Shown: in pieces, positions 35,552 through 48,800 of the stretch
How the letters are laid out: every line of letters begins with the position of its first letter
How positions within the stretch are numbered: the stretch's first letter is position 1
From: Zygnema circumcarinatum SAG 698-1b
Lineage: Eukaryota; Plantae; Zygnematophyceae
Length of the DNA stretch: 64,000 bases
NCBI GenBank assembly: GCA_037447605.1
Contig: CM074808.1
Location: forward strand, 992,001-1,056,000
Direction of reading: 5' to 3'
Made by a program: the position numbers and the translations under genes
Notes under the pieces: model-generated
Told to the model about the DNA's origin: nothing
Databases searched by the model: none
Seen by the model: the letters and a program-made list of their open reading frames with translations, nothing else

Positions 35552-38347
35552 TCAACGGTCGATGCCCTTGTAAGCGGAGGCGAGGGCGGCCAGGCCGGCC
35601 TTGTAGTCGGGGTACTTGAGCTGCACCTTCAGCTCCTCCTTGATGCGTCTGTTGCAGACACGCTTCTCCCCTCTGCTTGCACCTCCCGCCTCTCCCTCTC
35701 TCCCAGGGGTCTCCACGGCTCGAGGAGCAAGCTCAGAAAGGCCCAGCAGGGCTCGCGCAAACACTAAAACATCGCTTCTTGGAGTAGGATCATCATCCAC
35801 TACATTGAATATGCCTCTGTCAACTCACAACAGAACATCAAGAGGCAACAGGTCGCCTCAAATTGCCACACAACCAGAAAGAAAAATGGAAGTCTTCGAT
35901 CTTGTTGAAAAAGATGTGCGAGTTTTCAAACCCGCTTTGAGCTCCCTTTCCTATGGCAAGGAGTCAGGGATGGACTCATACCTGCTCTGAGGCTGGGCTA
36001 TGCTTGCACAGATGACTTGGCACACATCTGCCAAGTGGCAACGTGCAGTATACCGCTGAGATTCTCGCCGTCTTTGACTTGCTGACAAAGTTTGACTATT
36101 CCTCAGCGTGTCCAGAATACTGCATCTTGCAAGAAACCATTGTGTTCGAATAAGCGAACTCGCAAAGGCACAAATGACTCAACATGTCAGGCTGAGTCAA
36201 TGCTGAGAGGCCTCCTCTACGTTTAGTTCAATGCTATGCGTTGGTTCTAAGAGAACAAGTGTTGCTACATGGATGGTGCCTACGAGCTGCGAAAGCGAAA
36301 GTTTTTCGATGAATGATTGCAAATTGCCCAACTTTAAATCGCATAAATTCAACACGTGTGAAGTTATAGACTTTTACTGAGATTTGTATGCTGTCCTTAC
36401 CTCCGCCCCGGCCCGTAAATGCCACCCAAACGAAAGACGTGGCTTGGCACATTCAAAGCTTCTCCCAACTGTAGCCACGCCTCCTCCGCCTCCACCCGAG
36501 CTTTGGCTTTCGCATCCATGGCTTTAGCAGGCGAGCTGAAGGAAGACGCAAAGCCATGAGTGGTTTCACTTTGAATTAACATTTTGGTTTCGTCGAGGGT
36601 TCCGAGTTGGGAAGAATCAGCCAACAGATGGAAAAGGAGCAGTGGAACAGAAGCAAGAAGGACAAAAGCATTATATGCTAGATGTGAAAATCTCCCAGAG
36701 TATGGTCAGCTAGAAGTATAGAGATGGAACACTGGAGCATCTGAAGTCATCATTTTCGGTAGTGAAAGCTTGAGCAAAAGTACTTCGAACTTAGAAGTTC
36801 ACCCGTTCTGTGCCGAAGAAATTGAAACAAATTCTGATGGCAATTCTCACCTCTCATCCACCATGTCTCCTTGCCAGTCTCCATACACAGCTGTCACCTC
36901 CCAAGAACAGAACGGCGGCCATGTACTGAGACATGCTGCAAGCTAAGTGTGGTCCCGCAGCATGGATGCGATTGTCAAGCGACTTACGCAACAAAGAAGT
37001 GGAGGTACTCACATGATGTAGAAAGATAGCCAATCCATCGCAAATTGCATTTGCTAGCCAATTGGATGTCTCCAGAATGCCATGTCAGCACCTGCAGTGA
37101 TACATCTGCGACCCCAACTCCTTGTCAGCTGCATTGTCGGCTTTTCATTATTGATAAAAGTTGAGGCACTTCGTTGAACTATGGATGTGTCGAGCTGTAA
37201 AACTCACTTAGATGACTTTTTGACCAAAGCTAACATAAGCCAGGGCCCTGAACCTGGAAAACGAAACCTCAAGACAGGGGCCAGGGGCCTTCAAAACTTA
37301 TTCAACTTAGATGTCTGCCTCCTTGTAACTTCCCTCATACAATATACCAACCACTCGCATGAAATTGCTGAAACGCATTGAATCGTCAATAGCAGCGACA
37401 CCTGATACCTGATCATGGCTCGGTGACAAGCAAGGAGGCACAGTGGACAGAATATGTGTGGCTTCATGAATGGCAAGTTTGCCCGAATGCCTGCACGCCA
37501 TCCTCAAACGCCAAGAGGTGACTGGTGACAGACATTCAAGGCTGCCGCATTCGATCTGAATTGTTGATCGTTTTTAGGGAAAAAAAGTGCTCAAATGAAG
37601 TCCACTACATTCTAGGAAGGAAGTAATGGTGTGTGATTGGATAAATCGGCTGGTGTGCTTGAAGTATCGTACCTGAGGCCATGACCGTCAACACTCGGGT
37701 TGAAGACATGCGCATCAATATCGCAAGACAAAAGGTTTTGTTGCGTCACCTGAGTGCGACAGGTTCCTGCAACTTCCCTGCATCCCACAAACCTCCAGTT
37801 CGGAGGGAAGGTCTGTAACAACCACGTACTTGGTAACTTCCTAGATCTAGTGGAGAATTGGAGGTCAAAAACAAACGAATCACAAACAGAAACGCCGTTC
37901 AGCATTTGTCTAACAAACCATTCAGAATAGCACCTGGTGGGCAAGACTTTCGGCTGCTTCGAAATGTTGCAATAGAAATGAAAAATCATGCATAAATAAA
38001 CTGTGCATAAGCCGAATCGAAACATTAGCTTACCAGCCGCTGTCCTTCAGCGTTCTTGCTATAGCTTCTCCAGCATACCCTAAACCAAAACAAAACAATT
38101 TTGGACGAGTGTCTGGAAGCATTGCTGGAGCATTCGAGCATTTCACGACGCATTGGCCATGCTTGAGGGAGGCTACCAAAACGAAAAAGCCCGATGCCCT
38201 CTGAATGTGAAAGCAGGACTTTCGCGGCTCTGTCCGGTATAGAGGATTGGGAGAATCTGGCAGAGTCGAGCAAGGAAAAACCGATTTTTTCAGAGGATGG
38301 TGCATGGAGAGAACTGCGTGCCAGGGTCCTAGTGCAGTAGCCCCCAT
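35552..38347 (-). CDS. NAD(P)-binding Rossmann-fold epimerase/dehydratase-like (atypical SDR, At1g19690-like), probably plastid-targeted
   Basis: KLFCFGLGYAGEAIARTLKDSGW (dinucleotide-binding Gly motif), AKARVEAEEAWL...HVFRLGGIYGPGR, and terminal DDDPTPRSDV...RGEKRVCNRRIKEELKVQLKYPDYKAGL. ATG at 38347 with a transit-like N-terminus. Confidence 0.85.
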
Positions 38348-39372: not shown

Positions 39373-41253
39373 CTACTCTGCCTTGTCCAATTCGCTCATT
39401 CGCTCTATTATGGCCTGCACACATAACAAGCGCTTTTCATGCATTAGAAATGAAAAATTCTGAAGGTATCCCCTCCTTTTGCACATTTATTTGCTTACAG
39501 CATGTACGAGTATGTAAGCATGAACGCACCCGTTTGCTGGTCTCCTGCAGCTCACCGGCGAGTACAAATTCATCGAGGATCAAGTAGACCTGGCAACGTC
39601 CCACACTCTCCCAGATTGTAAGCACCGACAAACGCTTCCTCAAGAGCAGCAATATCAACATTACCAGTTCATCTATTCACTTTATGTACTGACTTCCTCT
39701 CTAATCCCCACTTTCCAATGAGGCAGAGGTAGCAGCACCTTATGGAAGTTAAAGACGAGGTCAAGCTCGCAAACGTTGCTGAAAAAATGGTCAAGAATCT
39801 CCACAAAGAGATGTATGCTCTCCAGGTACGCCAGCTCATTGTCTGTAAGGTCTACACAGACAGAGAAAAACAAGCCTGCATAGCGCCGGTAGATCACCTT
39901 GTAGGTTCGAAACTGCAAGCAGACAACATAAAGAAAAACAAAGTTGAAATCAGATATTTTTCCAGCCTTCACTAACGAAACTCCAGTCCAAAAATCCTGA
40001 ATTTACTGCTCAAGAACACTGTGAGGTTTTGCAGGTCAAGGAAGAGTCACCCTCTCATTCAGGGCTCCATAACCAAACCGACCTGGCCTACTAGCGCATA
40101 TCCAGCTACAAAAATGCGAAAGTTGCAAAATTCGGAAGTCCAGCCTCACCTCTACAAAATTGGTGAATTTTGGATCCCGATTCACGACCAAACGGTGTAC
40201 CTGCAGACAAAGCAGCGGCATGGACAAACAAACCCTTGAGAACAACAAATACCTCAGAATTTTCATGACCTTGCAGATGCATTATCCTGACAAATGACCT
40301 ACGATACAATCATCCAGTTTAATTTTCGAGAATAGTGGGACCATACTGACCAGTAATCAAAACGTGACCATACGTGGCTTAACCTGGAGTGGGGGAAAAT
40401 GGGTCTCTAGCACTTTCATTTCGACCTTTGGCCTCGATGTAGAGGAGCATTTACAAACCCAGCATACTGTAATTCCAACCAAAAATCAAACTTTTGCCCT
40501 TATAGAAGGATTTCAAAAAGCACATGATGGCTGGACAGAAACTACTCTACCAACGACCTAGGAAGTGGGAAATGCATAACCTAGAATTAGGGATACAGTA
40601 GGATAGTAAACAGAAGATGGTGCAAACTTGTATCGTCGTACTACACTACCTAAAAATCCATACATTATACACAAAAGTTACCTGTTCATACTATACTGAT
40701 GCGCTGACGTAAATGTGCACTACATTGCGGTTCACACCACACGCTGTTTCCCAAAACAAAACACTTTGACCAATCATCTACTAGTTGAGACGTGCGCATC
40801 ATGGTTCAACTTGATTAAAGGTGCCTATGCCAGCAACTTCACCGTCTACTAAACTCCGCGGGCAATGTCGAACTTTGTTGGAATTGTTCTATGAGCGTTT
40901 GATCCAGCAACAATCAAAGGCGTTTTTCTCTGTTTAAATCTGATGCGATCAATCATCCATATCGCTTCCTATTTCTAAACTCAAACGATCCAAACGGCCG
41001 TTCAGGCCTCAGAAAGGCTCATCAAGCCCCCTTTTTACACCGCCGACATACCTCATACTCGACTTTGTGCTTCTCAGAATCCTCTAGCGGCACATAATAC
41101 TTCGCCAGACGCGTCTTCCCCTGCCGGTTTTGCAGAAGAATGAAGCGAATCTGCCAGATTCATTAACAAGGTTACCCACTGTAAGCATACGATCTGCATC
41201 AAACGAGCGTCGACGACGACACAAACAGCACGGACTCAACACCCACCCACCAT
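39373..41253 (-). CDS. AP2S: AP-2 complex subunit sigma
   Basis: The first coding exon is ATG only (41253-41251). It continues [33 protein letters not shown]|[17 protein letters not shown]|[58 protein letters not shown]|[20 protein letters not shown]|[13 protein letters not shown]. Confidence 0.97.
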
Positions 41254-41793
41254 ATCTCAGCCGCGTAAATGTCTCTCTTCCAAGGCCCCGTGAATGCGCC
41301 TCTAGCGGCAGCCCCGCATAGCGCAACCCTTTCCGCCTGCTCGCCTTCCCTCCCTCCCTCTCGCTTGCCCCCTTCAGCCCTCTTGGAGCCCCTTCCTGCA
41401 AAGAGGCGTCCGTACATACAATGCGACCGTACGATGACGTTGGCTGCTGTACGCAACGGTACATTTTCCGTACGTACCAACGTCAGCGTACGTCACGTGC
41501 TGGAAGCACACCGGAATCGCTTCTGTATCTCTGTGCTCTGCAGGCCACGATGGGAGGCTTGAGGCCAGGGAACGCCTTTCCTTTACTATTACTAATTTAT
41601 TTGTTTATTTTTGGTGCTGTTACCGAAGTATGGACACTGCACAGAGCACAAGCTGCAACATGCAGCGGCTCATATTTGCATTGTGTGAGTATTGTGTTAT
41701 TGGGCAGGGTGAGACATTGCGGGGATTGTTTGAGTTCATGGTTGGAAAGGTCAGCTGCTTGGAGCTGCGAGACATATGTTTGGAAGGGGGGGC

Positions 41794-44700
41794 TCATAAC
41801 AATTCTTGAATAAGTCTCTCAATATGGTGCTTTGCGGCTGCTCCATGCTCACTTTGCCATGGAAGTGTAGCAAACAGAGACGGCCTCTCCAACAATGACT
41901 GCAGGTAAGCTGCTTGTCTCTCAGCAGAGCTCCGAACGTTGAGAAGGTCAAGTTCACGGCGCCATCTCTCGGCGATGCTTTTGACATCTTCCCACGCCTC
42001 ACAAAAGACTCCTGCAACAGCAAGTTAAAAAAAAAGATGAAGAGAAACAGCAGAAATAGAACAGACCGAACATCCTCACCCGTAACGTGCAACCTACTAG
42101 TTCCACATGCATGCTGCACCAGGTAGGTGCTTGACGTTGCTGAAGCTGAGGTACGGACAGAAGGGTAAGCAAAAGAGAAAGGCCGGACAGTCTACCAAGT
42201 TTAAAGTCATGGAACCACGCTGCGTCCCCTTCTAAAAAGCCACTGCTATCCCCAGCGTCTTCCTCAAAACGGAAACAGTCAGCCACCTTCTCTCTCTGCA
42301 TAAACATTTTCCAGAGATATCAGAACACAATTGCAAATACGAGAAAAAGAAAAGGGAAAGATAAACAAAAGTTGGCAACATGAATCACTCACTATGGTAT
42401 GGGTGAGTTGTGCAGCCTCTGCAAAGCCCTCAAAGAAATGTTTGCTGGGCTGGTGCATCTCGCTTGCCACTCCTTGGGGCTCATAGCAAACTGCATGGAA
42501 AAATATAGCTAGCTGCACTGCCATGGGTTCGGCAATGAAGTGCGAATATCTGCAAAATTCCAGTCAAGAAGGGCGAACCTAGTCTGTCCTTTTAGGCTCT
42601 TGAAGCGGAGACTGTTCTTCTCAAGTTCCCGAGTCCCAAGGCATATGAAATGAACTGTTCAGATTTCCTTCCTTCCTTCCTTCCTAAGCAGAAATGAGGA
42701 CAAGTGCAAAACCTTACTTGTGATACAATTTATACAAGCGGTGGAGCTCGTCCAGGTTGTGGTAGCACCGCCACGTGGAGGTATAGCGCTCGTCCAGAAC
42801 GTTCCACCATTGCAGTGTGAGCCCATCCTCTACTCCAAGGCGTTCCATGAGCCCAACCCACCGTGGCCAGAGCGGATGGCGGCACAGCCCCTGCTGCCAC
42901 CTTTCAACCATTGGGGCGGTTCTCTCCTTTAGCAGCATCCATGCTCGTTGCACTTGCTGTTCTGTTTCTTCCACTGTCCATCCGTTGTAGATTGCGACAT
43001 CAGCTCGAGTAAGCCGTTCACGAGAAGTCATCTGCTCCCAAAGAAAGAAAAACTATCCTAAGAGAGCCAGTTCCTTGAAACATCATACCAAAGCTATGAC
43101 TGAATGAGACTTTTCTTATAGCTCTCCCATTGAAACTCAGAAAATGCTTCGACTCTCTGAGACTCCTTGTATTTATTCTTACTTGAGCCTTCATCCTCTT
43201 CTCCGCCTCCTCTTCATTCAGGTTGTTCCGCTTCATGAGGCGCTCACATGCTTGCTCTTTGGAGGCAAAAACGACCCAGACTTCGTCCATTTCCTTGTCA
43301 GATCGAGCTTCAAGCATGAGGGCTGCCTCGGCCACACAGAAACGCACTCCCTGCTCCCCGAGTGCTTCCTTCTCTTCTACCACCAACCTCCTTACAGCTG
43401 GCCAGACAATGGAGGTTAGTCTGGCCATGGCATTTGCGTCACTAAACACAATCTTACCAAGGGTTAGCCGATCCACCGTGCCATCACCTGTGCGTAGAGT
43501 TCACGAAAACAAGGAGGAGGGGTCCCGTAAGACAGAGCATTCTTTAGACTGAATAAGCTTTCCTGATTAAGATTCATAGGACAGATAGCTCACAGACGGT
43601 TCCAATCAGCTGCCCTTCCGTCTTCAGATCCAGCATTTTCAAAACGTTGAATTGAAACGGGCCACCCGATGAAAAAATTCGCAGTCGTATAGTTTGAAAA
43701 CGTAGGCGCAATGTTCTTTTAGGGGGGCATGTACTCACCTGGCTTTAAAATCCCTGAACCGAATGTCTTTACTAAACTCTGAAATGTGGGAGTATGAGGC
43801 TCATATGATCGGTGTGCAAGCGCATCACAATCAATAGTGTGGGCCCCACACTTCCTCAATAGTTCGCGCACAAGGGATTTTCCACAGGCTATTCCTCCAG
43901 TGAGGCCGATCATGAACGGGGGGCAACTCAGAGGACCCCTCTTGAGTCGCTCCAGTGGAGACCTGCGATAACGATGAAATAGTATTCCAGGTGGAGTCAA
44001 ATTTATTACCTCATGCCTGTCTTGTTTCCATGTAGATAGTTCTATACGACTACGAGCCCCTCTTGGATTTCCACAAGTCTAACTCAATAACTTAACGCTA
44101 CTCGAGGCTTTTCTTTGCGGCTCCTTTAGCTCCTCTTCCGAATTGCTTCTGAATTATATTCTGAGGCATATTCATACATTGACAGGAGTGACGAAAGGGA
44201 GTAGGAAACGGAGTCATTGAATCAAACCTTGACAATGTAAAGAATGAAAGCAAACCGTCTTAACTCCAAATCTTAAGCAACAAACCATTTGAATCACGCA
44301 CTCATCGAGGAATAAATACTGATGCAAAAGTTCTTTTCTATCAACCATAGCCAGTTGTTTCCCGAAAGTAGACATGCTCAAAAAGCTCACCTAGGAACAA
44401 AAGTTCCAAGACTTCGCTTCCGGAGTAAAGTCGAACTCAGCTTTTCTTCTGACTCTACTGCAGCCTCTGCCACCATTTCTACAACAGCCACCTGCCATCA
44501 TCCCATAGTCAGTCAAAAGCTCCATCGAACTTTGCAAATCCTTAAGCACAGCTTCAACGCTACCTTACGGTGGCGGAATTGTTACCCTCAAAGTCGAGAA
44601 CTTCATTCATTCACTATGTGATGAATGACAAGACGCACCTCAAGGGCTTTAACTCCATTGGCCAGCCTTTTCCTGTTAAGGGCCTCCGCTCCCCCCTGTG

Positions 44701-45145
44701 TCTCAGCACTAACAACAATGCACTCCAGAGATGGATCTGTAGCTCCTCTTTGAGGGACAACTTCAGAGATTGGTACAAACTCAAAATTGAATTCCAACCC
44801 TTTGGAATTTGCCAATTGCCTTATAAAGGATTCGACGGCTGCACGACGATTCTCGTATGGCTCTATTAACTGCAAAAGAACAAACAGGGCTTTAACTGGA
44901 ATGAGCCCGCTGAAACCAGGTAGAGCAGACTTGAACATTTCCGAATTGGATAGAGAAAGGATAAGAAAAGGAGACGCGCTCACCTCAGATAGCTCTTTCT
45001 TGCTCTGTAATGCCTCAGTTGTGATGCCCACGACCAATCCACCGCCAGAGCGAGTCAGTGACACCGCCCTGTTAAGAAGCTGTCTATGTCCGTCATGAAG
45101 GTGATCGAAAGTGCCAGCCACCACAGTGGCCGCATACTTTCCCAT
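41794..45145 (-). CDS. COASY: CoA synthase: phosphopantetheine adenylyltransferase + dephospho-CoA kinase + C-terminal HD-like (COG4339-type) domain; 603 aa, 9 exons
   Basis: Exons 45145-44984, 44869-44639, 44491-44391, 43962-43739, 43487-43183, 43031-42718, 42549-42393, 42295-42196 and 42011-41794 have consistent phases (1812 nt). Motifs: GTFDHLHDGH (HxGH), IVVSAETQGGA, linker KLSSTLLRKRSLGTF, Walker A GLTGGIACGKS, then WW..LDERY...YHNL, AVQLAIFFHAVCYEP and YLQSLLERPSLFAT. Confidence 0.92.
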
Positions 45146-45810
45146 TTGAAGATGCGTAGGAGTGAGCACTCATGTGACGGGGCTGCTACTACGGTACTTG
45201 AAGCAGCACAGAGTCCTTGCTGCAAGGTCCAAAAACGCGATAGTCTACAAGCAATAAAATCGAAAGATGCCCTAAGAAACGACGACGTTCAACATATTTT
45301 GGAAACAGATGCGATGATGCTCTTTCTCGACTACGATACCATCAACAAGACTAAAAGCCACAAGAACAAAATGTAAGAAAGACGGTTTTTTGGGTTTCTT
45401 GAAAATTCAAAGCTTCAACGGCGCGCTTTTTTGAAAAAATGATTGACTTTCTTAACCTGCGCAAGTAAACCATGTTACCATGTTACCTTCACGAGTGCCC
45501 CCCTACAGGTCTTCCTGCATATCCCTGCATTCCCACCTCAAGAGGCACTGATCACACGCCAGGAACGGGTCCACTTCAACGAAAGTGGATTTCAAGCGTT
45601 CGACTCGCCAATGGTGTCGTTTGAACGTGTTGATCTCTTCATGATGGTTGGCTGCTTCAAGGCGGCTGCTTTGCAGACGAAAAGTGGAACCACGACGGGC
45701 TGAGATTAGGGTTGCCGATTGATGACAGTTGGGCTATGGCTTTGCTGTGAGACCTTCGTGAGCGAATTATTTGCAATCAACTGCAGGGTGCTGGTCCTGC
45801 TGGAGGAGCC

Positions 45811-48800
45811 ATGGCGGACGTGGAACAGATCAGCGCTATGGCTATGGAGAAAAGGGAGAAGAAGGAGAGGAAGAGAGTCCGCTTCAGTGGAGACCATGAG
45901 AGTGATGATGATGAAGCCCCCGAGTACGATTGGTGGTTTGAAGTCTTACAGGAAAGGAAGATAGCCAGAGGGAAGCAGCTGCAAGAATAGCGTATGTGGG
46001 TAATTAACTGGTGCAGAAGTTTCCATTCCTTGTTGGAATTATTTGTTTACTTAATTGTGATATTTCTGTTTCCTGAATGGGCATCCATATGCCTGGCGAC
46101 GGTCTATGCAGACCCCGACAGGCGCTCTTTCCGAAGGCGAAGAAAGCGAAAGAGAGTGTGGACGAGGAGGAAGATGGAGGGCCAATACTGGCAGCTGATC
46201 CTCGGGTCGCAGCAAAGGAGAGGGCAACAAGACGAAAGGATCAAATTATCGCAAATGATGATACCGGCATGCTTGATGATGTAGCCGATGCCGAAGAGGA
46301 GTATCAGGTGAGCTAGACAGCGTCCTTGATTATGAATACCTGTTGTTGGACGCTGGGAAGATTTGGAAGTCATTTGTATGGGCGTCTTAATCAAATGGGG
46401 CACATATGTTCAAAAAAATAGACGCCGCTGGAGTGATAAACGAGGCCTCATGCACGAGTTTTCCACCTTGTCACTAGGAAACAATCACCCTCTTTGAACG
46501 TAGTGGATTAGATAGTTATTGAAAAGGTAGGCATTCTGATGGCGTGAGAGCTTTGCTTGGTGCTTTCTTCCCTTATTTTTTTCTGTTTTAATCTGCAATC
46601 TTGCTTCTAGGACCTGCTCCAGGTGTTCAGGCTGTTCATTCTTTGAAGTACTCATTTTCACGTTCGCTTTCCTCCTCGAATTTATGGCGGTTGAAAAACC
46701 CTTTATCTTTCAATATCATCCGTATGTTACTGAATGTGCTTTTTGTTTGCACTTCTGCGACAGCTTTTTCTGTTCATTCCTCTGTTCTTCCTTCCCTTTC
46801 TTCCTTTACTGGGTGGTTTGGGTCCACAGTTGTTACTTCATTTTCTGTTTTCTGCACTTCAGCATGATGAAAGCACGTGAATGTACATGCAACTTTGGTT
46901 CACGGTTCAAGCAAGATAGGGACAGTATGAACAGCGTTGCGGATCAGAGGTTTTTTTTAAAACGGAAAGTTGAGTTCTGCGTGAGATGAAGCGAACGCAA
47001 ACTCTGTCATGCACAAACCCTGTGATATGAATAGCTGTGGCTTGTTGTTTCTCTTGTTTTCTAAACAAGAAACAATGGCCGAAAAGTTTACTGTCAAGCC
47101 TCCATCCATTTTAGGCCTTGTTGTGGTTGAATAATAGATTGCTCTCACTTGATTTCTTTGCGACGCTTTTCTGTATTTAGGGCAAAGATGCGGATGAAGT
47201 AAACGAGATCGAGCCATTTAATTTGAAAAAGGAGAGAGAAGAGGGTTACTTCGATGCAGACGGCAATTACGTGGAGTACCGCCTTGAGAAAGACATCCAG
47301 GTAGGGGCCGTGTGGGACCATTGCTGCAGAAGAGCACTTCCCTTATGGTCTCATCCTGCAACCTCTTGATATTACGTTATGAGTGTCATCGCAATAGTCG
47401 AAGGTGCTACTACTGTCTTATAGATCTCCTCCATATGATGTTGGAGTGAAGTGAGTCCTTAGGATTACCGCGATGGAATTATATAAGAGAATTGTTGGAC
47501 TGGAGTAATTGGAGTATAAGACGTATTGGAGTGTAACACTGGATAGGGGGCGGTAGCAGGATGCCTGGTTGGATAGCACAACAGTGGATGAGCGATTTGC
47601 AGCGAAGGCAGCCGCTCAAGCAGCGGCTGCTGATGAACCTCCACCTGAGCTTTCAGCAGCCGAGATGGCAGCAATTAAGCGGCGAATTGCAGATGCTTTG
47701 GAGCCCAACGAAACGGTGAGTCATGATTGCTAGAATTGTGCATAGTGTTGGAACCTCTTGTTTGTTCGCATAGCCATAATTGCATTCGGAAGCCTTATAG
47801 CAAAATAATAGCGGAGGATGCATGATGCGGGTTACAGGTTCTTCAGGGGCTGAGGAGATTAGGTGGAACAGGCCGTAAAGCTGGAAAAAAGAAAGGCATA
47901 CCACTTGGAAGAGATGAGCGGATGCCAGAAGGCACAAAGGAGCGATTTGATCGTCTCACAGAAGATGCAATGAAGCTTATGGATGCTGGAGAATATGGTG
48001 AGCTTTGATCGCTAGAGACTTCTTCCGATTCTTTTGACCGTATATGTGGAACAGCGTGGAATGTCAGAGCCTTGGGCTTTCCATATCCTCTTATTGAAAG
48101 CACGTTCAGTAACCTGTACTGACATATTTCTACGTCACATTTAGTTTGGGTCTTGAAAGAGTTGTCGGCATTAAAGAGCACAGAGTGTGTCCAAGCTTCC
48201 TATTCTCACTTCTGCAGCTCTCTTTGCTTGCAGGAGTTTATTCGGAAGCAAAGGAGACTTTTGAGCGTGAGGCAGGTGGGTGACTGCTGCAGGTGCTTCT
48301 CCGGACTTGGTTGGGACCATGCAAATTATTTCTTTATTTCGTTATTGAATCCTCAAAACCATTGCATTTTATCAAAGACTGGGGTGCAATAATCTTGCAC
48401 TTCTTTCCTGACAGTGTTTTTCCTGTGCTCCTACTATCATCCTGCAGCTGGTTATGAAGCTTTGGCTCGTGCGCGATCTGGACCGTCAACAGGCGGTTCT
48501 GATATGTTTGGAGATAGCGATGATGAAGAAGCCAAGGCACAACCCTTAAGGCCAGCGAGCAGCAGTGAGCCGATGCCTGAAAGCACAGAAGGCCGCGATG
48601 TTGCTATTCAACAGGGGGGTTCTACAAGTAGCGGTCCTTTGACTGATGGGCCATCAAACCAAGGTGTGAACATGGCATCTAGGATGTAAGAGCCACTTAT
48701 GTGGGTTCGAATGGCATGCAGCCGGATATGAGTGAAGTCAACGTATGTTGTGTATTTAGTTGTTAGCGAAGGTACACTATGTAGTGTGTTGATGTAAGTG

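Follow-up and report, generated by a model that had tools for sequence, protein, structure and literature searches.

Animal coenzyme A (CoA) synthase, COASY, carries phosphopantetheine adenylyltransferase (PPAT) followed by dephospho-CoA kinase (DPCK) on one chain, and the animal sequences that we recovered have an N-terminal extension and stop right after DPCK. Here we analyse a CoA synthase gene in a 64,000-nucleotide stretch of DNA (the window) from the zygnematophycean alga Zygnema circumcarinatum SAG 698-1b (assembly GCA_037447605.1, contig CM074808.1, positions 992,001 to 1,056,000 of the forward strand); all coordinates below are those of the window. The predicted protein has the same two domains in the same order and is 36–39% identical to vertebrate COASY over around 380 residues, whereas it lacks the N-terminal extension and continues beyond DPCK into a tail of around 205 residues related to HD/phosphodiesterase (PDE)-fold proteins. 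The gene probably encodes an active bifunctional CoA synthase joined to an inactivated HD/PDE-fold domain, a pseudoenzyme that would have been kept for a non-catalytic role.

In domain order the protein is closest to three-domain proteins of the algae Mesotaenium and Spirogloea, the liverwort Calypogeia and the choanoflagellate Bicosta minor, all of which align with it colinearly over their full length. The streptophyte members of this set are 44–48% identical to the Zygnema protein and fall with it into a well-supported common clade in trees of the tail and of PPAT plus DPCK; no characterization of the Mesotaenium, Spirogloea, Calypogeia or Bicosta proteins was found in the literature searched. 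The tails of Mesotaenium, Spirogloea and the Bicosta-like protein P0086 (which shares a 90%-identity cluster with the Bicosta minor entry, itself truncated in the tail) keep 34–37 of 39 conserved positions, including the H, HD and D of the family, whereas only 20 are present in the Zygnema tail and three of its four metal ligands are missing. The tail also aligns across the whole profile of a family of stand-alone predicted HD phosphohydrolases of around 210 residues, with the motifs R.YH...H, FFHD.VYDP, DNE..S, FLD.DL and IR.EY still recognizable; unlike the Zygnema tail, these proteins are free-standing and keep all of the motifs.

One spliced gene encodes all three domains

The gene lies on the minus strand and is arranged as follows.

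41794–45145, minus strand: whole coding sequence of the three-domain CoA synthase gene, nine exons, 603 amino acids, stop codon at 41796–41794, obtained by exon joining and translation
45145–44984, 44869–44639, 44491–44391, 43962–43739, 43487–43183, 43031–42718, 42549–42393, 42295–42196 and 42011–41794, minus strand: exons 1 to 9
42718–43031, minus strand: exon 6, in which DPCK ends and the HD-like tail begins (near 42866); uninterrupted open reading frame (ORF) 42714–43031
41537–41853, minus strand: alternative intron seen in one run, with a GT donor after 41853 in exon 9 and an AG acceptor before 41537, at the loose end of X1 record 1

Joining the nine exons gave 1812 nucleotides, or 603 codons plus TGA, with GT..AG borders throughout and a consistent phase, and bore out the single 603-residue ORF proposed in the initial annotation. 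The strings GTFDHLHDGH, KLSSTLLRKRSLGTF and GLTGGIACGKS, together with the tail strings, were all found in this ORF. Exon 6 encodes the last 44 or so residues of DPCK and the first 50 or so of the tail in a single open frame; because both sides of the junction sit inside its uninterrupted ORF, the junction is independent of splicing, and the earlier claim that the tail is not a splicing artefact stands.

We then mapped contigs from four studies, one public run from each, onto 41600–45400; the runs are not recorded as RNA. All eight introns had been removed exactly at the predicted borders (CT..AC on the plus strand) in these contigs, and contigs without any intron are cDNA-like. Exons 5–9 were spliced within a single contig twice (X4 record 8 and X1 record 1), which agrees with the single transcript expected for this part of the gene, and the pieces listed for X5 record 15 connect exons 5 and 4 with exon 1. 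Low-depth contigs retaining introns 3, 4 and 8 were also present. The evidence for splicing consists of Logan contigs, which are strand-blind and may merge neighbours. Such merging, together with the intron-retaining contigs, is what could be said for an annotation artefact in which DPCK and the tail would be made separately or the exons would come from two genes. This is scarcely credible given that the junction lies within one exon with its frame uninterrupted, that exons 5–9 occur in single spliced contigs of two runs with every joint recurring across the four studies, and that the same colinear architecture is found in more than ten other organisms.

At the 5′ end, a TGA at 45172–45170 lies in frame upstream of the coding sequence and, in each of the four runs, contigs pass from 44984 to 45400 without a splice, so we took the ATG at 45145 as the start; the same evidence rules out an N-terminal extension or an upstream coding exon. 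At the 3′ end, the alternative splice in run X1 would exchange the last 19 tail residues for 54 unrelated ones and give a product of 638 residues, whereas in the other three runs exon 9 reads through into the 3′ untranslated region.

The first two domains are of COASY type

The two enzymatic domains lie within the first six exons.

44391–45145, minus strand: PPAT domain, residues 1–165, exons 1–3, with GTFDHLHDGH and KLSSTLLRKR; matches to CTP_transf_like and NF001985
42900–43962, minus strand: DPCK domain, residues around 178–385, exons 4 and 5 and the first 44 or so codons of exon 6, with the P-loop GLTGGIACGKS

The PPAT domain is of the archaeal/eukaryotic type: exons 1–2 match Pfam CTP_transf_like (Cytidylyltransferase-like) at 6.7e-6 and NCBIfam NF001985 (pantetheine-phosphate adenylyltransferase) at 4.4e-12 and 2e-9, and both the nucleotidyltransferase H.GH motif and the SST..R motif are present. 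Exons 4–5 match Pfam CoaE at 7.3e-16 and 4e-19 and TIGR00152 at 2.5e-20, above cut-off, placing a CoaE domain with its P-loop on the same chain, C-terminal to PPAT. A set of 24 COASY-like proteins of animals, streptophytes and protists has 58 invariant or near-invariant positions, and the Zygnema protein keeps 56 of these. In a maximum-likelihood tree of PPAT plus DPCK the Zygnema branch is of ordinary length (0.39, compared with 0.37–0.49 in relatives).

From the 56 conserved positions we infer that both domains are active. A single cytosolic polypeptide would then convert 4′-phosphopantetheine to dephospho-CoA at its PPAT domain and dephospho-CoA to CoA at its DPCK domain. The profile matches and conserved positions substantiate a PPAT–DPCK fusion of COASY type in the green lineage, as had been claimed. 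The accompanying description of an animal-style enzyme with an extra domain is overstated; the protein is better read as an old eukaryotic three-domain form, with the recovered animal sequences having the first two domains only.

The tail belongs to an HD family and has lost most of its metal ligands

The tail and the altered sites within it map as follows.

41797–42866, minus strand: HD/PDE-fold tail, residues 397–603, end of exon 6 and exons 7, 8 and 9, assigned by the family profile match
42747–42749, minus strand: codon GAG for E436, at the invariant first His of the family (R.YH...H); column 82, where all 117 stand-alone proteins have H
42492–42497, minus strand: codons CAT GCA for H464 and A465, the HD dyad reading HA; columns 127–128, H and D in 100% of the family
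42200–42208, minus strand: codons for D528, F529 and K530, the D.D of the family reading D.K, preceded by H527 where the family has Leu; columns 230–233

Scanned singly against Pfam and NCBIfam, the tail exons gave no match, the pieces being too short, and exon 6 had no usable match in the ESM Atlas. An exhaustive phmmer search with exon 6 returned 26 proteins, including long ones in which the end of DPCK leads into a region with HD-type motifs (R.YH...H, FFHD.VYDP, DNE..S, FLD.DL..LG and IR.EY). A profile of 12 fused tails then retrieved 429 proteins of around 210 residues, named ‘predicted metal-dependent HD superfamily phosphohydrolase’ by JGI and ‘Metal-dependent HD superfamily phosphohydrolase’ in UniRef, from Chitinophaga and other bacteria, chytrids, a lichen fungus, Polysphondylium, Tribonema, molluscs and a brittle star. 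The link of this family to COG4339 comes from the JGI product name of stand-alone members.

For scoring by hmmsearch we built a profile from 117 stand-alone proteins only, with no fused ones. Residues 397–602 of the Zygnema protein matched positions 9–212 of its 216 with 111 bits and an E-value of 2e-30 (Z = 1e6), and intact fused tails scored 170–250 bits. This likeness far exceeds chance; homology of the whole tail to the family of predicted metal-dependent HD superfamily phosphohydrolases is secure, and the C-terminal HD-family domain of the initial annotation is upheld. Intact relatives are borderline for Pfam HD (PF01966; cut-off 22 bits), with 22.6 bits for P0025, 20.6 for P0010 and 16.0 for P0003; the Zygnema tail was scanned against Pfam as single exons. 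A sequence search of the PDB with the tail profile gave chance spectrin matches only, so that no solved structure was matched by sequence. The tail family thus forms a divergent HD/PDE-fold group, and Pfam has no model dedicated to it.

We next compared the tail with the family at those columns, 39 in all, whose residue is shared by at least 85% of the stand-alone members. Twenty of them are kept in the Zygnema protein (Y424, R429, Y431, H432, A460, I461, F463, H464, Y468, E476, S481, D522, D528, L531, R549, E551, L568, L572, A591 and L602), among which A460, I461, F463, L531, L568, L572 and L602 are hydrophobic core positions. The 19 lost positions include H436E, D465A, N475S, T509E, L527H, D530K, Y541V, Y544I, Y552L, R564Q, N594H and E598L. 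The metal of HD superfamily enzymes is held by the ligand set H...HD...D, so the substitutions H436E, D465A and D530K remove three of the four canonical ligands. From this set and the DNE and D.DL motifs together, only H464, E476 and D528 remain. The broken HD motif described initially is thus real at H436E, D465A, N475S and D530K, but the E of DNE (E476) and the first D of D.DL (D528), also given there as replaced, are kept. With three of the four ligands and roughly half of the conserved positions substituted, the Zygnema domain would be unable to bind the catalytic metal and is most likely a pseudoenzyme.

The L-to-H change before D.D is also found in the transcriptome protein P0006, and this bears on whether the site has been rewired rather than lost, with E436, H464 and a new H527–D528 dyad binding metal in place of H...HD...D. 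In favour of such a rewiring, the ‘W(F/L)HD’ string is common to the Zygnema protein and P0006, whose DPCK domains are only around 55% identical; a ligand His and an Asp persist, and Glu is able to coordinate metals. We nevertheless consider it very improbable. Invariant second-shell or substrate-side residues (N475, T509, Y541, Y544, Y552, R564, N594 and E598) are gone too, and adjacent helix residues rarely bind the same metal. Inactivation remains the better account of the substitutions.

Models of intact relatives predict a PDE-like fold and suggest a fixed domain arrangement

The fold was modelled on the closest intact relative and not on the Zygnema tail itself, using Mesotaenium residues 1005–1219, a 48-row alignment and AlphaFold2 (AF2). 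The resulting model is all-helical, with a mean pLDDT of 94.4 and a pTM of 0.90. The best matches of a Foldseek search against the PDB were catalytic domains of class I phosphodiesterases, together with Lin1889 and Ddi2; all of these belong to the HD superfamily, and they matched at weak E-values of 0.02–0.1 and TM-scores of around 0.6. Comparison with 48,161 representative chains by VIA-align gave clearer Z-scores: PDE7A, PDE5, PDE8A, PDE1B and PDE4 matched at Z 15.5–14.8, with around 200 of 215 residues aligned at a root-mean-square deviation of 3.3–3.6, and HD hydrolases came next (2pq7, a ‘predicted HD superfamily hydrolase’, Z 13.3; YpgQ, 5dqv, 11.1; YedJ, 3gw7, 10.0), with MESH1 (5vxa) in the same Z range of 10–13. 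The Mesotaenium tail is therefore predicted to share the fold of class I cyclic-nucleotide phosphodiesterases and of these HD hydrolases, although identity to them is only 10–16%, no PDB entry matches by sequence, and the comparison is with the Mesotaenium tail, not that of Zygnema.

A full-length AF2 model of the intact relative P0003 (633 residues) was compact, with a pLDDT of 90 and a pTM of 0.83, and had one long helix, residues 388–417, running from DPCK towards the HD domain. This model suggests a fixed arrangement of the three domains, in which an all-helical HD-superfamily domain of around 205 residues would be rigidly attached to the end of DPCK. A fixed arrangement of this kind would account for the retention of a dead domain. 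In Zygnema the domain may persist as a folded appendage with a supporting or regulatory role towards the DPCK/PPAT core; it may be part of the fold or of an oligomer, or serve as a binding site. The sensor or regulator role put forward in the initial annotation is a hypothesis.

The three-domain architecture is shared with other eukaryotes

The architecture is not special to the Zygnema genome. We found colinear three-domain proteins in Mesotaenium endlicherianum (ME000204S02996, a model merged with an upstream epimerase-like region), in Spirogloea muscicola (SM000049S16775), in the liverwort Calypogeia fissa (an ‘unnamed protein product’), in the environmental cluster P0003 (named ‘phosphopantetheine adenylyltransferase/dephospho-CoA kinase’ by JGI), in EukProt (the transcriptome protein P0006 and a ‘Rhum_’ protein annotated K02318/COASY), in the choanoflagellate Bicosta minor (EP00729 P007764) and in several ENA and Logan proteins, with several protists among the sources. 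In all, the colinear architecture occurs in more than ten other organisms, mostly with intact HD motifs. The survey was word-based and its picture of the spread is under-sampled; a search limited to the P0003 tail added only three long proteins. The Zygnema protein is 43–48% identical to its five closest relatives, all of the green lineage, over nearly its whole length.

We placed 129 tails and stand-alone proteins in a tree, in which the fused tails all fell into one clade of 14 with an SH-like support of 0.93. This clade also contains two 191-residue fragments and is separate from the 115 stand-alone proteins. Within it the streptophyte tails, that of Zygnema included, formed a subclade with a support of 0.999, and the tree of PPAT plus DPCK returned the same streptophyte clade with a bootstrap of 100. 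The simplest reading of this limited sampling would be one old fusion in eukaryotes. The three-domain type is already on file for other algae and a bryophyte, and the inactivated version is a new variant. No papers on the HD family, COG4339, a COASY–HD fusion or algal and bryophyte CoA synthases were found, subscription literature lying outside the search.

The survey also contained a 603-residue protein from a JGI metagenome, P0060, with PPAT and an intact HD tail around a middle region that has no CoaE match; here the kinase, instead of the HD domain, appears to have decayed.

Divergence is concentrated in the tail

By domain, the Zygnema protein is 46–53% (PPAT), 52–58% (DPCK) and 30–35% (tail) identical to its green-lineage relatives, and intact tails are 38–49% identical among themselves. 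The Zygnema terminal branch in the tail tree measures 1.46, compared with 0.46–0.91 in other streptophytes. Other tails show decay as well: that of Calypogeia is partly degenerate, with 26 of 39 positions kept, HD changed to HR and D.D to D.H; P0032 likewise keeps 26 of 39 and reads HR for HD; and the tails of P0006 and P0018 are more decayed, have large insertions and fall below the profile threshold. The change of FLD to (F/L)HD is common to the Zygnema protein and P0006, whose sister relation is weakly supported (53), and this support would fit shared and parallel inactivation alike.

The tail might be a relic that drifts neutrally after loss of phosphoesterase activity and will eventually be lost, with only PPAT and DPCK mattering. 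Its branch, about twice the length of those of relatives, the loss of 19 of 39 conserved positions, the still more decayed tails of P0006 and P0018 and the splice in one run that exchanges the last 19 residues all fit such drift. We nonetheless judge it unlikely. The frame is open across four exons and 207 codons, the profile match is still full-length at 111 bits, and the core hydrophobic residues are kept together with R429, Y431, H432, H464, E476, S481, D522, D528, R549 and E551. Moreover, the model of the three-domain relative P0003 packs compactly (pTM 0.83), and the whole protein may therefore depend on the tail to fold.

Flanking and minor features

An epimerase homologue lies near the CoA synthase gene: a minus-strand region at 35582–36498 gave a tblastn match to residues 235–421 of Mesotaenium ME000204S02996, within its N-terminal Pfam NAD-dependent epimerase region. 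An epimerase–CoA synthase fusion like that in the Mesotaenium model is ruled out here, as the homologue is a separate locus around 5 kb downstream. Either the epimerase-like and CoA synthase genes are neighbouring loci in both genomes, or two genes have been merged in the Mesotaenium model.

Upstream of the gene, contigs with exon 1 extend at least 720 nucleotides beyond 45400 (45400–46120), a region in which a Lys/Glu/Asp-rich ORF begins on the plus strand at 45811; these observations suggest either a long 5′ untranslated region or divergent transcripts that overlap and were merged during strand-blind assembly. A minus-strand upstream ORF of 26 codons (45093–45173, ATG at 45173) overlaps the main start at 45145 in a different frame. 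Intron 6 contains a (GGAA)n microsatellite at 42659–42692. An Rfam scan of 41000–46500 gave no match.

Function of the tail and significance

The metal ligands of the HD domain are retained in most relatives, where the domain presumably acts as a phosphoesterase on a CoA-related nucleotide. A CoA-related phosphoester is a plausible substrate because the fusion partner is DPCK and because other DPCK fusions carry phosphoesterase domains. The CoaE–GrpB, CoaE–Nudix, CoaE–DHH/DHHA1 and CoaE–TldD proteins resemble the Zygnema protein in having an extra domain C-terminal to DPCK, and Nudix (P0064) and DHH/DHHA1 (P0069) are also phosphoesterases; unlike the Zygnema protein, these fusions are mostly bacterial, lack PPAT and have partners of unrelated fold. 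Partners seen in this set of DPCK fusions (P0064, P0069, P0066–P0081 and P0071) further included TldD/PmbA, GrpB, pyroglutamyl peptidase and thioredoxin. Bacterial CoaD–COG4339 fusions, mentioned in the initial annotation, were not found.

Several points weigh against a CoA synthase with a retained, inactive HD domain. E436, H464, H527 and D528 could in principle form a different metal site, and the catalytic activity of the intact family is itself a prediction. The gene neighbourhoods of five bacterial stand-alone members had aconitase, glyoxalase/GSDH, RadC/LplA or COX genes but no CoA gene. The Zygnema tail is predicted to retain the fold on the basis of a profile alignment, and its fast evolution is equally expected under neutral decay. 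A retained pseudoenzyme is still the probable reading. A more specific version, which at present we hold to be doubtful, is that repeated and old fusion to PPAT–DPCK identifies the HD family as a CoA-linked phosphoesterase and that the dead copies (those of Zygnema and P0006 and, in part, the liverwort) are CoA-nucleotide-sensing regulators of the last two steps of CoA synthesis; substrates might then be the 3′-phosphate of CoA or 3′,5′-ADP, or mis-phosphorylated or cyclic CoA by-products.

For the Zygnema genome by itself the finding is a modest one: its CoA synthase is ordinary and expressed, and bears a degenerate appendage. Although CoA synthesis belongs to textbook biochemistry, no description appears to exist of the third domain on the CoA synthase of many non-animal eukaryotes, and this conserved domain is probably noteworthy to specialists in CoA metabolism, the degenerate Zygnema copy less so. 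The fusion provides a functional lead for an orphan HD family that is widespread in bacteria, fungi, protists and some invertebrates. Together, the intact domains of Mesotaenium and Spirogloea, the half-degenerate domain of Calypogeia and the probably dead domains of Zygnema and P0006 form a natural series in which catalytic, regulatory and structural roles of the third domain may be compared.

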